DNA of 37,056 bases, taken from assembly GCA_024704765.1 (NCBI GenBank), contig JAKMXF010000305.1, positions 1-37,056 of the forward strand. The letters run 5' to 3'. Below the pieces are notes generated by a model that saw nothing but the letters and a program-made list of their open reading frames with translations, was not told where the DNA came from and searched no databases. The position numbers and the translations under genes are program-made. This document shows positions 2,574 through 11,720 of the stretch, piece after piece (position 1 is the stretch's first letter; each line of letters starts with the position of its first letter). The stretch comes from Oopsacas minuta. Taxonomy: Eukaryota; Animalia; Porifera.

Positions 2574-3269
2574 TTTATGTGTCATCAAACTATGGTTTCT
2601 TGTAATGGAATTAACCTCTACTAAAAGTAGACCGAATTTCGATTTTGTGAGTAAAACTAACATCTACTTATTTGTGAAGTAGAACTAATATCTACATGGG
2701 AATAGAACTAATGCATGCGCCCCAATTAATATACAGAATAATATATAGCCTATGAATTTTTGCTCGAATGAATAGATTTGCTTATATTTGTAGAACTACA
2801 AATTATCAAGCATTATATTCAACGAAATTCAGAAAGTTGGAAAGAAGTGTGTAGTAAGCATATATCTAGCAAATATTTCATTCTTTGATATATGATGTGT
2901 TCAATAAATATAATATCGATGTATTTTACAAAGTATATAAACTATAGAGGATGTGTAGCGCTCTAGAGTTACTGTAGGGACTATGGATCGCACATATAGA
3001 AATTATCCGAAGATAGCTAGAGAGAGTAAGAATTTATACCAATGTGTCTAGCAAATTCATTGTGTATATGCGATCTTGCGTAGCTCAAATTTGTATTCTG
3101 GTCTCTATTTGAGCTTCAATGGCGTACACTTGAAGATCGATTTATTCCAGTGCTGATGAAATAATTTAGTGGAATCCATATCAAACAGTGGAAATGTGCA
3201 TAATCTGGACAAAATAAATGAATGCTAAAAGGAGTAGTCAAAATTTATAAGAGGGAGTGATATGTAAAA

Positions 3270-5997: not shown

Positions 5998-7190
5998 CCA
6001 AGGAGGTCCAAAAAGTTTTTAGAATCTATATGAAGGAATAGTTGGAAATGGATTATTATTTTATAGTTTCTCGAAGTATACACCAAATGACTGGATGCAT
6101 AAATCCATCCTTCTAAACCAACTTTCAAAACAATTTTCCCAGTCTTCATTGGTAGGTCTTGGAGGGCCTCATTATAAGCCAGTCTTGCCTCTTCTGTACT
6201 ATTGAAATTAACCCCTTTGATCTTCTTTTTAGTTTAGGGAAAAGAAAGTCGCATGGCTTCCAATCTGGGGAATATGCTGGATGGGTATCAATTTTATGCC
6301 ATTTTCTGCAAAGAAATCCATTGTCGAAGCTGCCTTGTGTGCACTTGTATTGTTATGGCGCCATTGAAGTGAGGTGAGATAGGCTTTAGGATGTAAAATG
6401 CTCCAATTTTCTATCACCTGAGGCATGCAAATGTTGGCATACCAACTCGCAGTTACAGTATTTTGCTCGACAAGGGGAATAGTAGCAACATGTCCCGTTT
6501 TAGAGATAAAACTGGCGATCATTTGCTTGTTGCCACTTTGTGCACTTTCAATTTTTGAGGGGGATCATCATCTTGAAAAGCCAAATTGAGGATTGTTGCA
6601 TCGTCTCTGGGTCATATTGGTAAATCCAAGTCTCATCTCCCATAATGAATGTACTCAATAGCTTTGAACGACCATGATCGAATTTTCCGATCATAAAATT
6701 TGGACCAATACACTCGAGTTGTCATTTGTTCTTCAGAAAGTTTATGTGGAATCCAACGTGCAGCCAGTTTCCTCGCGAAGAGATGTTCATGAAGTATGGT
6801 ATGGAGGTTTCCTCTGCTGATGTCTAAATGACTCATTATTTCGTCTATTATTATTCGACGCTCATTTTTGCTTATATTTTTAACTTTCTGGATATTTCCT
6901 GGGTTAACCGCATCTGCAGGACGTCTTGATCGCATCTCATTACTTAGAGTCTTTCGTCTATGGTTAAATTCACCGTGCCAGTTGTACACTGTAGCCAAAG
7001 ATATTGATTTTTCCAAATGTGTCCTGAAGTTGAATATGTGATTCTTTAGGACTGAGTTTTCTCATAAAGTCATAGAAAATCATTGCGCGAAAGTCCCTCC
7101 TTTCCAAATGTAAATCCATGAGAAATAATTAGGTATGAGTTTAAAATTACAGCCAAGTGCTGACTATATAAGTAGCTGTCAAAAAAGTAA
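5998..7190 (-). mobile_element. mariner element 1 (one TIR retained)
   Basis: TA then CAAGGAGGTCCAAAAAGTTTTT at 5998 (mariner-type TIR); full-length transposase remnant inside; opposite TIR not recognisable, so the right coordinate is approximate. Confidence 0.85.
6061..7119 (-). pseudogene. mariner transposase pseudogene
   Basis: MDLHLERRDFRAMIFYDF start, TVYNWHGEF, RWIPHKLS, ETWIYQYDPE, TVTASWY, HPAYSPDWKPCDFF, GVYFEKL*; span of about 352 codons with frameshifts. Confidence 0.92.
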
Positions 7191-7790: not shown

Positions 7791-8392
7791 ACTTCATCTA
7801 CTGGTAACGAAAACCACCTATAAACTTGGGTAAGGGAAAATACCTCTTAATGGGGAAAGGGGAATGTAGTATAATAGTAAGTAAGTAATTAATCCAAAAT
7901 AGAAGAGTATCATATGTTGGCGTTTAGACACAGACTTGGTAAATGAATCAAATATATTCAGGTCTTTATAGATTCCTATCTATTACTAGATGTTATTATT
8001 TACAAATTATACAAATATACTAATCGACAAGTTACAAACCTGAACGAGGGAATTTTCATTGACGTTTGAAATCATTTTAGAATGTACTTAGTAGTTGTAC
8101 ATAGTAGTAAATATCTTTCTACTTAGTAGAAAACAATGAGTTATTCGCATATTTAAATCGCAAATAATTTACTCAATTATCCACCGAGCTGTAGCATTTT
8201 GAAATACGAGGGGCACTCGGTGCTCCTCGTATCTCAAAACTATACCCCATTTTCAATTCATTGCAATTCTGTCGACTTTTTATATATATTCTTCAAGTGA
8301 TTATATGGTACTAAACCAAATTTCAAGTCAATACGATAATCTATTATAGATATAATTTTCTTCAAGTGTTTAGAATTTACGATTTTTGAAAT

Positions 8393-9080
8393 ATGACTAT
8401 GGATCTAAATCGAGAACATTTCCGTGGGATGATATTCTATAATTCTAAGATTGGTTAAGCTCATCATGATTGTCCTGAACGTTTGACTCAGGCATTTTCA
8501 ATATCTCCATCATTTTCAACTGTTACCTACTGGAATAGTGAATTTTCACGAAAACGGGAATAGTTTGGAGTTGCTCCAAGAACTGGTAGACCACAAACTG
8601 CGACAACAACTGGCCATATCGAGATAGTACGGTGCAGTGCGCAATATATTACTTGAAATTTTGGTCTACACAAGCTTAACAGTCGGCGGATCCCACATCT
8701 CTTGACGGATTCCCAAAAGCAAGCTAGGATTGTTGATTGGTGTAAATCTATGCTAGTGAAATTCGATATGGGGAAGTCTAGTAGAGTTTCTCAGATAATT
8801 ACAGGCGATGAGACTTGGATATATTCTTATGAGCCTGAGAAAAGAAACTATCTCAGGTTTGGGTGTTTTCTAACGAGGATGCCCCAACAAAGGTGGCGTG
8901 TGTGTAAGTGAAACTGGAAAACAAATGGTTGCCACTTTTGTTGGTAAAAGAGGTGATGTAGCAACTGTAATGTTGACAGAACAAAGAACAGTAACTGCTA
9001 AATGGCATTATACAGTTTTCCTTACAGTACTTTCTCAAAACCTCTGTGAACAGGGCCCGGATTCACCACTTAGAGGTTTA
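8393..9080 (+). pseudogene. mariner 2 transposase pseudogene, 5' part
   Basis: MTMDLNREHFRGMIFY, RTGRP, RRIPHLLT, IITGDETWIYSYEPE, KQMVATF, QRTVTAKW, ..PLRGL at the TA insertion site. Confidence 0.9.
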
Positions 9081-11406
9081 CAGGTTTTTTTTAATAAGGA
9101 ACACCTTCATAAGGAACTCAGGCTGAGAATTAACGAAAGATTAGGGAACTCTTAGAAATTGCCCAGCCTGAGATTATAAAACCATAAATAATATACCTAT
9201 CATAGAATCATTTATTAATTTATCAAGAATAATTCAACATCGTCTATATCTTTCTTTGATATATAATCAATTGTATCATCTTCAAATACTACTTTAAACT
9301 AATCATGCCTACTGTTAAAATATTGGATCTTTCCAATAAACCACCCATTTTTATATAACCTTTTAACTTGTTTTCCAACGATTTCATGGTGAAAAATCCT
9401 ATCAGCTATATTGTCCTCAAATTCTTCACTCTCATCATCATCATCAATTAGAGGACTTTCAGTCTCGGGTTCAATATCTACAATTTCATTTGGTTCTGGG
9501 TTTTGCATGTCTGGAGCCACAGAGCCCGGTTCAATCATAGAGGGAGGAGGAATGTTGTAGTCAGGTAATCCTTCTGGTTGCACCAGGTTATCCTCAGTAC
9601 CAACAGCGGTCATGAAACCACCAGTTTTGCCATATCCGCAATCTGAGTGAATCGTACTCCGAAATTATCAATTTTTTATATGCTTCACTTACCCAATGAG
9701 TAAGCAAAATCCGCCGCTCTTTCCTGTTAAAACTTTGCGTGCTTTCATACCACTTGGTGGCATTGTCATCGGAGTCAAGCCACTCACTCATGATGCTTTT
9801 GGTTTAGGAAAACTTTCAGTAATTCAGCATATCCAGTATCTACCAGTTGTCAGATGTCAGTTGCATTAGGTAATCCATACCAGCAAACGGCATTTAAATC
9901 TGAAGCAGATTTCTTAAATTCATCAGATACTTGTGCTGATTAATTGTCGCAAAACTAGACAAAACGATCAATACTATGTTTAACTATGGGGGAGAGGGTA
10001 CGTTTTACCCATTTGACAGAAAATGCGGTATCTGCCCATGCGTTTTCTTGATAATGCACATCAATATACGGGTGCCATGCATTTTTTTCATCCTCACTTA
10101 TCCTTTTCCCTTTCCATTGGATGTAATTACAACTCGAGGCTGCTTCCCAGTTGGCTGAAAACAGACTTGGAGAGTGCACTGACGTTTGTCCAAGCCACTT
10201 CCAAGTTGGGATGTCCAAACTTTATGTTCACGATTGTTTGGGTTATTCTTTTCTAACATTTCATATGTTTTCTTTGTATTAATGACAAAGGGACAAGGAG
10301 ATTGATCAACATTAAATCGCTGCTCCGGTGCATACCTATCCCATTTGGAGTTATAAGAGTCTGCACATCCTGTCCTTATCAACCGTTCTCTTGTAGTAGC
10401 ATGCCATTGTTGCATCGGGAGACGAAAGTTCTCCTTACTTAACTTACGATTTCTCTGGCGGAAGCGTAATCTTAAATCATTTCGTTTGATAAAGTTCACG
10501 ATTACATGTTTCCTTACGATGGCATTTGGATCGTTCCTTTCTGACTGTATAGAATTCTAGCTTTTGACCATATCCAGTTGAATCAACTCGGTGTCCTTTA
10601 CTACGAGCTTCTAGGAAACCTTCCTTAGGTCCCTATATAATCCCGCGTATTTTGTCAAAGGTCTGATTTTCAAGAGTTTCTTATGGTCATTTGAAGCCGC
10701 CAACATTATCTTTCCCTTTTTCAAGTGCCACATAGATAACATTGATTTGCTGTTAGTTTGTTTCTGGCTAGTACCTTAGGTGATACCCCTACTTCAAGAT
10801 TTAAAACAATTTTCGCTTTGAACACTGAATTATACTGCCGTTCATTATCTTGACCACGGGATCTTTTAGCAGGTGGCTCAATTGAAATATCTTGTGTTTC
10901 AGATACTCCTAGCTGTAGTTCTAACTGAATAAACTTTCGAAACATGTTCGATTTCAGCTATACTACTAATAAGTGGGATGTTGTTTAGTTCGACATTGGT
11001 ACTTTCTGAGATATTACCGTGTTTACATTTTAGGTGTACCGTCAATCCTTGTTGATTTTTGAATTTGTCATCACAGTGGGGACATTCCAATTTAGGCTGT
11101 CCTGAACTGTCAAGTAGAATGATTTCGTTCCATACCCCACGGTGGCTAACGCGTTATATAGATCCAAAACTCCCAAATATTGGCTGTCTGTTAGCACACA
11201 CGTAAAAGCTAAATACCCATGTTACAATGTTAAAATGTAAATAATCAGTTAATTAAGTAATTGAATACGTAGGTACCTTCTTACGTAACAATATTTCGAG
11301 CCCTAGAAAATAAAGAACGGATAAGAAACTTTGAGGGTTAAATAGGCCAAAAAATACGGAACTTCAGCCTGAAGTTTGAATTGGGGTTCCTTATAAAAAA
11401 AAAGTG
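9081..11406 (-). mobile_element. pogo-superfamily (Passer/POGK-like) transposon, 2326 bp, defective
   Basis: TA on both sides (9079-9080, 11407-11408); imperfect TIRs CAGGTTTTTTTTAATAAGGAACACC and the inverse CACTTTTTTTTTATAAGGAACCCC; shared subterminal CAGGCTGA; pogo transposase inside. Confidence 0.9.
9215..11090 (-). pseudogene. pogo DD35D transposase pseudogene with N-terminal C2H2 finger and C-terminal Tudor-like segment
   Basis: CPHC-x12-HLKCKH; Brinker-like RQYNSVFKAKIV; CENP-B-type HTH region (NFIKRNDLRLR); DDE_1 motifs FNVDQSP, KRQCTLQVCF, QENAWAD, FCDN, QLVDTG with 35 residues counted between the second and third D; several in-frame stops and frameshifts. Confidence 0.88.
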
Positions 11407-11720
11407 TATTTATGCAAACAATAATGAAAGCTCTCACACAGCCGCTGCAACCAGAGAATTCCTTGCCGACAAGCCCATTCAAGTGCTTGACCATCCGCCA
11501 TATTCTCCTGACCTCGCACCTTGTGACTTCTTTACATTCGCAAAGGTCAAAGTTCTTGTCCGTGGTTACCGTTTTCATCTCCTAGTGAAGCTGTAGACCT
11601 CTATAAAGAACACCTACATACCCTAACCAAATCTTAATTGTGCGACATTATAGGAAGTGGTTTGATAGAATGAAAAAGTGTATACAAGCTATAGGTGAAT
11701 ACTTTGGGAAGATATCATAA
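11407..11720 (+). pseudogene. mariner 2 transposase pseudogene, 3' part
   Basis: NNESSHTAAATREFL..VLDHPPYSPDLAPCDFFTF..WFDRMKKCIQAIGEYF; continues the 5' part across the TA at 9079-9080/11407-11408. Confidence 0.9.

Follow-up and report, generated by a model that had tools for sequence, protein, structure and literature searches.

We have analyzed a 37,056-nucleotide stretch of the genome of the sponge Oopsacas minuta (assembly GCA_024704765.1, contig JAKMXF010000305.1, positions 1 to 37,056 of the forward strand; hereafter the window) and, within it, a decayed DNA transposon of the pogo type, encoded on the minus strand, whose transposase ends in an acidic linker followed by a small module related to Tudor domains (Table 1). 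Homology among the genomic copies of this element ends at window positions 9084 and 11403; since the termini of the window copy have lost two or three bases, the limits of the element were set at 9081-11406, with the TA target-site duplication lying outside. When the flanks are joined after removing the element and one TA, the C-terminal reading frame of a mariner transposase is restored (…SHTAAATREFL…HPPYSPDLAPCDFF…), which indicates that the pogo element inserted into a mariner pseudogene.

The window copy is an old, dead pseudogene and does nothing. Translation of the minus strand between 9150 and 11700 yields a transposase-like frame scattered over all three frames, and comparison with an intact copy from the same genome (L004, see below) reveals 8 indels that shift the frame and 5 in-frame stops, one of which falls within the module, as well as a start codon that now reads GTG (11199-11201). 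With this number of lesions the entire gene is dead, beyond the tail alone. Also, the two reading frames differ by 90 nonsynonymous and only 21 synonymous codon changes, which suggests little or no constraint on the window copy, and Pfam analysis of the broken pieces returns a hint of the C2H2 finger, PF21743 at E 0.2 and little else. A first-pass annotation made from the letters alone had described an acidic run, DDDDESEEFED, followed by the module in a frame that an open reading frame (ORF) list truncates at a premature stop; both the run and the truncation are as described, the listed ORF ending at 9299. Its mention of one premature stop is accurate for the TAG inside the module and falls short for the copy as a whole.

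A DNA search of the sponge assembly (61.46 Mb, 365 contigs) identified four long copies besides that of the window, together with several short derivatives produced by deletion, so that the genome holds ~5 long copies and at least five short ones. Pairwise identity among three of the long ones (L002, L003 and L004) is 99.7-99.9%, and their identity with the window copy is 94%; mutual identity this high indicates very recent transposition in this genome. Among these young copies one ORF is intact, one has a single stop and one a single frameshift, and all three have clean ends, in which the duplicated TA is followed on both sides by a terminal inverted repeat (TIR) of the form CACGTT(T/G)T8-9ATAAGGAAC. 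The intact copy contains one 662-codon ORF between its TIRs and the module is part of this same ORF; the proposed fusion to the transposase, inside the element ends, is thus borne out. The short derivatives arose by internal deletion, with ~110 bp of the 5′ end fused to ~200 bp of the 3′ end, and some of them still carry the final 47 codons of the Tudor frame.

The intact protein (662 residues) comprises, in this order, a C2H2 finger, a CENP-B-like helix-turn-helix (HTH), a DDE_1 catalytic domain, the acidic linker and the module. Its DDE_1 match reaches 32.4 bits for a cut-off of 22, and the HTH_Tnp_1 and C2H2 matches are weak; among relatives, Pfam matches include CENP-B_N, BrkDBD and HTH_Tnp_1, and the family profile compared with the PDB retrieves the CENP-B DNA-binding domain (1hlv, E 6e-6) and Brinker (E 1.3e-3). 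Of the catalytic residues, D300 and D420 do not vary and D456 is kept in at least 90% of the alignment; 35 residues separate D420 from D456, a DD35D arrangement as initially annotated. The TA duplication, the TIRs, the DDE_1 triad and the CENP-B-type HTH together place the element in the pogo superfamily. A full-length AlphaFold model (mean predicted local distance difference test score, pLDDT, of 77) comprises a small N-terminal unit that includes the zinc finger, a stretch of disorder (residues 64-119), helices at 125-241, a catalytic core extending to ~530, an unstructured linker whose pLDDT falls below 50 at 573-594 and, set apart from these, a five-strand unit at 612-661. The linker of the intact copy, 55 residues long, contains 16 Asp/Glu, 2 Lys/Arg and 9 Pro. 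At the opposite end of the protein a conserved motif, (K/R)(K/R)Q-x-T-L-x-x-F-G-F-x-K, occupies residues 5-16 (L004:1712-1747, corresponding to window ~11154-11189); we take it to resemble the PIP boxes by which the N-termini of MSH6 and UNG2 bind PCNA.

The fold of the module was investigated by structure prediction followed by structural comparison. AlphaFold, applied to the last 65 residues with an alignment of 18 sequences, yields a confident model (pLDDT 95.3) made of five strands (15-20, 23-33, 38-43, 48-52 and 61-64). The top Foldseek matches in the PDB are all of the Tudor type (PHF1, PHF19, MTF2, RDM15, the ADCP1 Agenet domain, Spindlin, PHF20 and 53BP1), with template modelling scores of 0.67/0.75 for RDM15; the E-values are modest, from 4e-3, which is to be expected of a domain this size. 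VIA-align likewise ranks the RDM15 Tudor first in both of its runs, and in the one that compared 48,161 chains independently of Foldseek the match (Z 7.9, root-mean-square deviation 2.2, 54 of 58 residues) stands about one Z unit above the rest. Below it, at Z 6-7, Tudor domains are mixed with KOW, TraI, CarD and BAH barrels, so that structure by itself defines an SH3-like barrel for which Tudor is the best fit.

Sequence profiles lead to the same family. The Pfam profile PF21743 (PTM/DIR17-like Tudor) matches the sponge module with 22.0 bits (E 1.4e-4), short of its gathering score, and 11 of 23 relatives at E≤0.01 (best 5.1e-6), and precomputed PF21743 calls exist in three relatives. An exhaustive search of 1.84 billion protein cluster representatives with a profile of the module retrieved 599 at E≤0.001, including P0194 (E 3e-17) and P0254 (E 2e-14), which in Pfam score 167.6 and 146.6 bits for PF21743 and contain four and six tandem domains of this type; among ESM Atlas clusters, those of PF21743 lie nearest, and Spin/Ssty, Tudor-knot and Agenet come next. 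A word-indexed protein search restricted to the module returned one protein, and profile searches of the PDB with 5 and 42 module sequences gave weak matches to Agenet domains and to the KDM4A Tudor (E 0.15-2), a sequence link to the PDB that is at most suggestive. The sole PDB sequence match of the single module, BlaR1, was discarded as a short NGWF match due to chance. On the combined evidence of the AlphaFold model, the structure matches and the sequence profiles, the module belongs to the Tudor clan and is closest to PF21743, and we are highly confident that it is a real Tudor-family domain, in agreement with the Tudor/SH3-like barrel anticipated from the letters alone. The same type of Tudor is found in other arrangements: together with an HTH but without a DDE core (P0167 and P0185, possibly internal-deletion products), with arrays of C2H2 fingers (P0163, P0215 and P0176) and repeated in tandem, 4 to 8 copies in a row (P0128, P0194 and P0254).

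Could the module be simply a neutral or chance C-terminal extension devoid of function? The window copy is dead and some relatives have no module, as might be expected for such an extension. This is contradicted by conservation. Over 47 distinct module sequences (from the sponge, Nematostella and marine metagenomes), belonging to transposases only 40-55% identical and hence not near-copies of one sequence, Y20, G27 and N33 are invariant and others near-invariant (Table 1). Taken with the number of cluster representatives retrieved, the confident fold and the ancestral placement in the tree described below, this renders a chance extension extremely improbable.

Table 1. Features of the window copy, related copies elsewhere and conserved residues of the C-terminal module (residue numbering of the module; conservation over 47 distinct sequences).
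Feature	Position	Strand	Remark
Decayed pogo-type element, whole (2.3 kb)	9081..11406	-	94% identical to young sister copies
TA target-site duplication, left	9079..9080		
TA target-site duplication, right	11407..11408		
TIR, transposase 3′ end	9081..9104	-	CAG-GT8AATAAGGAAC, slight decay
TIR, transposase 5′ end	11383..11406	-	CAC-T9ATAAGGAAC, 2 bases lost
Transposase ORF remains	9215..11201	-	compared with intact copy L004:1700-3685
N-terminal C2H2 zinc finger	11019..11087	-	conserved in family alignment
CENP-B/pogo-type HTH DNA-binding region	10470..10840	-	limits approximate, frameshifts across
First catalytic Asp	10305..10307	-	D300 in intact copy
Second catalytic Asp	9946..9948	-	D420
Third catalytic Asp	9838..9840	-	D456
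Acidic proline-rich linker	9413..9577	-	without predicted structure
Acidic run DDDDESEEFED	9413-9445	-	
Tudor module, 65 codons	9218..9412	-	one stop inside
Premature TAG in Tudor module	9299..9301	-	Glu635 in intact copy; Glu in intact sister copies
Natural transposase stop TAA	9215..9217	-	
Mariner-like pseudogene around pogo copy	8380-9080 and 11409 to ~11650	+	
Second mariner-like pseudogene	6229-7119	-	
Sister copy L004	G000:C199:252900-255154		intact 662-codon ORF at L004:1700-3685, module at L004:3491-3685
Sister copy L002	C306:53129-55383		young sister copy
Sister copy L003	C44:904163-906415		young sister copy
Short internal-deletion derivatives (genome G000)	C222:418165-418485; C44:353852-354172; C308:109222-109533; C358:103342-103553; C244:274292-274655		
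TIRs of metagenome element L041	L041:184-209 / 2811-2836		CAC[GT]CT7-9ATAAG…
TIRs of metagenome element L048	L048:44-66 / 2733-2755		CAC[GT]CT7-9ATAAG…
Module residue	Y20		100%
Module residue	W24		94%
Module residue	F25		74% aromatic
Module residue	G27		100%
Module residue	Y31		100% aromatic
Module residue	N33		100%
Module residue	F43		98% aromatic
Module residue	D45		96%
Module residue	D49		98%
Module residue	Y50		83% aromatic

The conserved aromatic residues are located where strand 1 ends, where strand 2 begins and where strand 3 ends, and comparison with characterized Tudor and Agenet domains suggests that they may form a cage. HMMER aligns the LYENGWF segment of the module with FYNDGWW of the ADCP1 Agenet domain, placing Y20 opposite the Tyr, and F25 opposite the second Trp, of the YNDGWW motif. 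The ADCP1 cage is formed by Y129, W134 and F151, and binding to H3K9me2 is abolished by the double mutation Y129A/W134A (PMC6318295); judging by their spacing, the motif Tyr and second Trp are Y129 and W134, which would make Y20 and F25 their equivalents. The 18-residue spacing from F25 to F43 is that of Y623-Y641 in RDM15 and of Y47-F65 in PHF1 (PMC8184781). Also, D45 occupies the position of RDM15 D643, which contacts the methylammonium group, and D49 that of E647, which contacts H3R2 (PMC8184781). The pattern of a three-aromatic cage (Y20, F25 and F43) with two conserved acids (D45 and D49) is thus present at the level of the alignments, at the cage positions of ADCP1, RDM15 and PHF1, which accords with the aromatic cage suspected at the outset, and these residues are retained in the window copy despite its pseudogene state.

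The structures closest to the module, namely the RDM15 Tudor (7DE9, bound to H3K4me1), the ADCP1 Agenet domain (6IE4-7, H3K9me1/2) and the PHF1 and PHF19 Tudors (H3K36me3), share its five-strand barrel and have cage aromatics that align with Y20, F25 and F43; as in RDM15, an Asp lies two residues after the third aromatic. They differ in that they belong to host chromatin proteins and are only 13-30% identical to the module; the second RDM15 Asp is replaced by Ser/Thr and the fourth PHF1 aromatic has no clear match. On this analogy, a mechanism may be proposed in which the Tudor domain, on its flexible acidic leash, would bind a methylated lysine of a histone tail, the likeliest marks, by closest structure and motif match (RDM15/ADCP1 type), being low methylation states of H3K4 or H3K9. 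The complex of transposase and DNA would in this way be held on marked nucleosomes, and TA sites in such chromatin would be hit preferentially, a targeting step that would parallel the one attributed to chromodomains on chromovirus integrases. The reading of methyl-arginine ranks lower, on what we take to be the cage pattern of SMN-type domains: the markers that we presume for it, an aromatic at +3 and an Asn at +5, are absent after F43, which we treat as a lead only.

The electrostatic character of the module bears on what it may bind. Its net charge has a median of -8 (range -11 to +1), which suits basic histone tails. In principle, the barrel could instead correspond to the SH3-like domain at the C-terminus of retroviral integrase and, without reading chromatin, bind DNA or keep the subunits of the synaptic complex in contact: this integrase is also a DDE enzyme with an SH3/Tudor-like barrel at its C-terminus. 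CENP-B has a C-terminal dimerisation domain and the pogo transposase self-associates (PMC4231638). Yet no integrase C-terminal domain is found among the best 50 of the 48,161 chains compared, nor in the Foldseek list, and this ranking, together with the charge of the module and the acidic linker, speaks against DNA binding, a role that we have rejected on these grounds; the loss of the module in three sublineages likewise disfavors an integrase-like function. We consider an integrase-type barrel improbable overall.

Further insights are obtained from the relatives of the sponge transposase. A word-indexed search with the full-length protein recovered 124 of them, with 30-57% identity except for one 97%-identical fragment, from sources that include Nematostella, Hydra and many marine metagenome contigs. 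The module is present in 46 of the 120 relatives listed, always at the extreme C-terminus, so that, as with the intact sister copy, its occurrence in other members of the family, whose absence the first-pass annotation had named as grounds for dismissal, is established. Two metagenome loci (L041 and L048) hold Tudor-bearing relatives between TA-flanked inverted repeats of the CAC[GT]CTnATAAG type and are therefore mobile elements rather than host genes; this TIR is conserved between them and the sponge element, with transposases only ~45-50% identical. A Nematostella locus (L121) consists of a gene model with introns, either a decayed element or a host gene, and examination of this locus for a TIR of this type found none.

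The relatives that are C-terminally complete but have no Tudor end ~72 residues past the PEGL motif, in an acidic run and a short motif, of which GNIFDIID, DGWIFDL and NLFDFL are examples (P0008, P0011, P0013, P0035-P0040, P0044, P0049 and others). This tail motif may stand in for the Tudor domain as a peptide tether, or may be what is left of the segment preceding the barrel. A maximum-likelihood tree of the core, computed with the tails removed by a quick search that left several forks unresolved, recovers a clade whose backbone consists of Tudor-bearing lineages and which has 100% support in the Shimodaira-Hasegawa-like approximate likelihood ratio test, with outgroups that have no module and with the short-tail forms in three nested groups. 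It thus looks as if the Tudor domain was gained once, long ago, and replaced at least three times, the tail being ancestral in the clade.

These short tails bring in the main rival to histone reading, according to which the Tudor domain is a tether to a non-histone host factor involved in replication, repair or silencing, through a methylated or unmodified peptide, and would either bring in the transposase or link it to some process of the cell, in the manner of the PCNA motif of pogo. Tudor domains are known to bind non-histone methylated proteins too. In the Tudor-less relatives an acidic-hydrophobic motif, resembling a peptide ligand, occupies the same place, and the C-terminal tails of pogo-type proteins carry host-factor or dimerisation modules (PMC4231638). 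The closest structures, and the only motif-level sequence matches, are however histone readers (RDM15, ADCP1, PHF1/19 and Spindlin), and we regard a host-factor tether as rather unlikely, ahead of the integrase-type barrel.

Some observations weigh against the reading of the module as a Tudor domain that guides integration. The PF21743 score of the sponge protein lies below the gathering score of 27.2, the Z of the RDM15 match is near those of small barrels with unrelated function (KOW, TraI, CarD and BAH), and the sequence matches in the PDB are weak, E 0.15 or worse. An Ala replaces F25 in 11% of relatives. At least three sublineages have swapped the Tudor for a short tail and are still transposon-like, so that the domain is dispensable for transposition as such. 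Finally, the window copy itself is inert. With these points taken into account, the explanation that we find best as a whole, a dead copy of a TA-specific pogo element of a Tudor-carrying family for which targeting to chromatin is proposed, appears somewhat probable. That the module is a histone methyl-lysine reader which biases integration is, by analogy with its structural neighbors, about evenly poised between being right and wrong. The more specific proposal, in which the tail would read low methylation of H3K4 or H3K9, making this the first natural cut-and-paste transposon to choose its TA targets by a chromatin mark, is put forward tentatively and leans on the same analogy. In the same account, a tail that is old, common to sponges and cnidarians, and repeatedly swapped for a short peptide motif is held with similar reserve.

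As for its surroundings, the window has a G+C content of 36% and contains mariner-like pseudogenes, features that mark it as eukaryotic DNA. Besides the pseudogene interrupted by the pogo copy, a second comprises pieces of transposase ORFs with typical mariner motifs (Table 1).

Reader domains are known in other transposable elements. In chromoviruses (Ty3/Gypsy elements, e.g. MAGGY), as in the family described here, a domain of the Royal family stands at the C-terminus of the element's own DDE enzyme, and their chromodomain is accepted as directing insertion into marked chromatin (Gao et al. 2008, as cited in 10.1101/2021.11.30.470311). Chromoviruses differ in being long terminal repeat (LTR) retrotransposons that pair a retroviral-type integrase with a chromodomain, whereas the sponge family has a pogo transposase of the cut-and-paste kind, specific for TA, and a Tudor domain on a long acidic linker, and its targeting is a proposal. 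In the intact sponge copy and in L041 and L048 the histone-reader-type domain lies within the ORF of the element's own enzyme, inside the element ends. The polyprotein of Gypsy-10_Ec32 of Ectocarpus also ends in a Tudor, to its authors' knowledge the first reported in a transposable element (PMC12477816, 2025); the likeness, which we draw by description only, is between an LTR retrotransposon of brown algae and a DNA transposon whose hosts are sponges, cnidarians and marine eukaryotes.

Within the pogo superfamily, PHD fingers on pogo/Fot1-like transposases are tabulated in a survey, and there a histone reader occupies the same C-terminal position, being a PHD zinc finger instead of a Tudor barrel. 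The portion of the survey table examined lists no fusion of DDE_1 and Tudor, the survey having scanned only Pfam TUDOR at its gathering score. Drosophila pogo and CENP-B similarly combine a CENP-B-like HTH and a DDE_1 core with a C-terminal add-on, a PCNA-binding motif in the former and a dimerisation domain in the latter (PMC4231638); neither has a Tudor, nor the N-terminal C2H2 finger of this family. Two large pogo classifications mention no such domain ('Tudor' there refers to M. Tudor, first author of the 1992 pogo paper), and no report of pogo with Tudor, or of a Tudor on a cut-and-paste transposase, was found in the literature searched. The combination thus looks unreported; its novelty is narrowed by the reader domains of chromoviruses, of the Ectocarpus Gypsy element and of pogo/Fot1-like transposases, which make this a new combination and not a new principle.

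The window copy is only a fossil, of value because it points to the family. The choice of landing sites by DNA transposons is largely unexplained beyond short target motifs, and chromatin-guided targeting is established for retroelements and not for cut-and-paste transposases. A compact family with an intact copy, very recent activity and a built-in Tudor domain makes the question of targeting directly testable and, if the proposed role is true, it would offer a natural template for transposase vectors biased to chosen chromatin states. The family also shows that mobile elements have captured reader domains as far back as early-branching animals.

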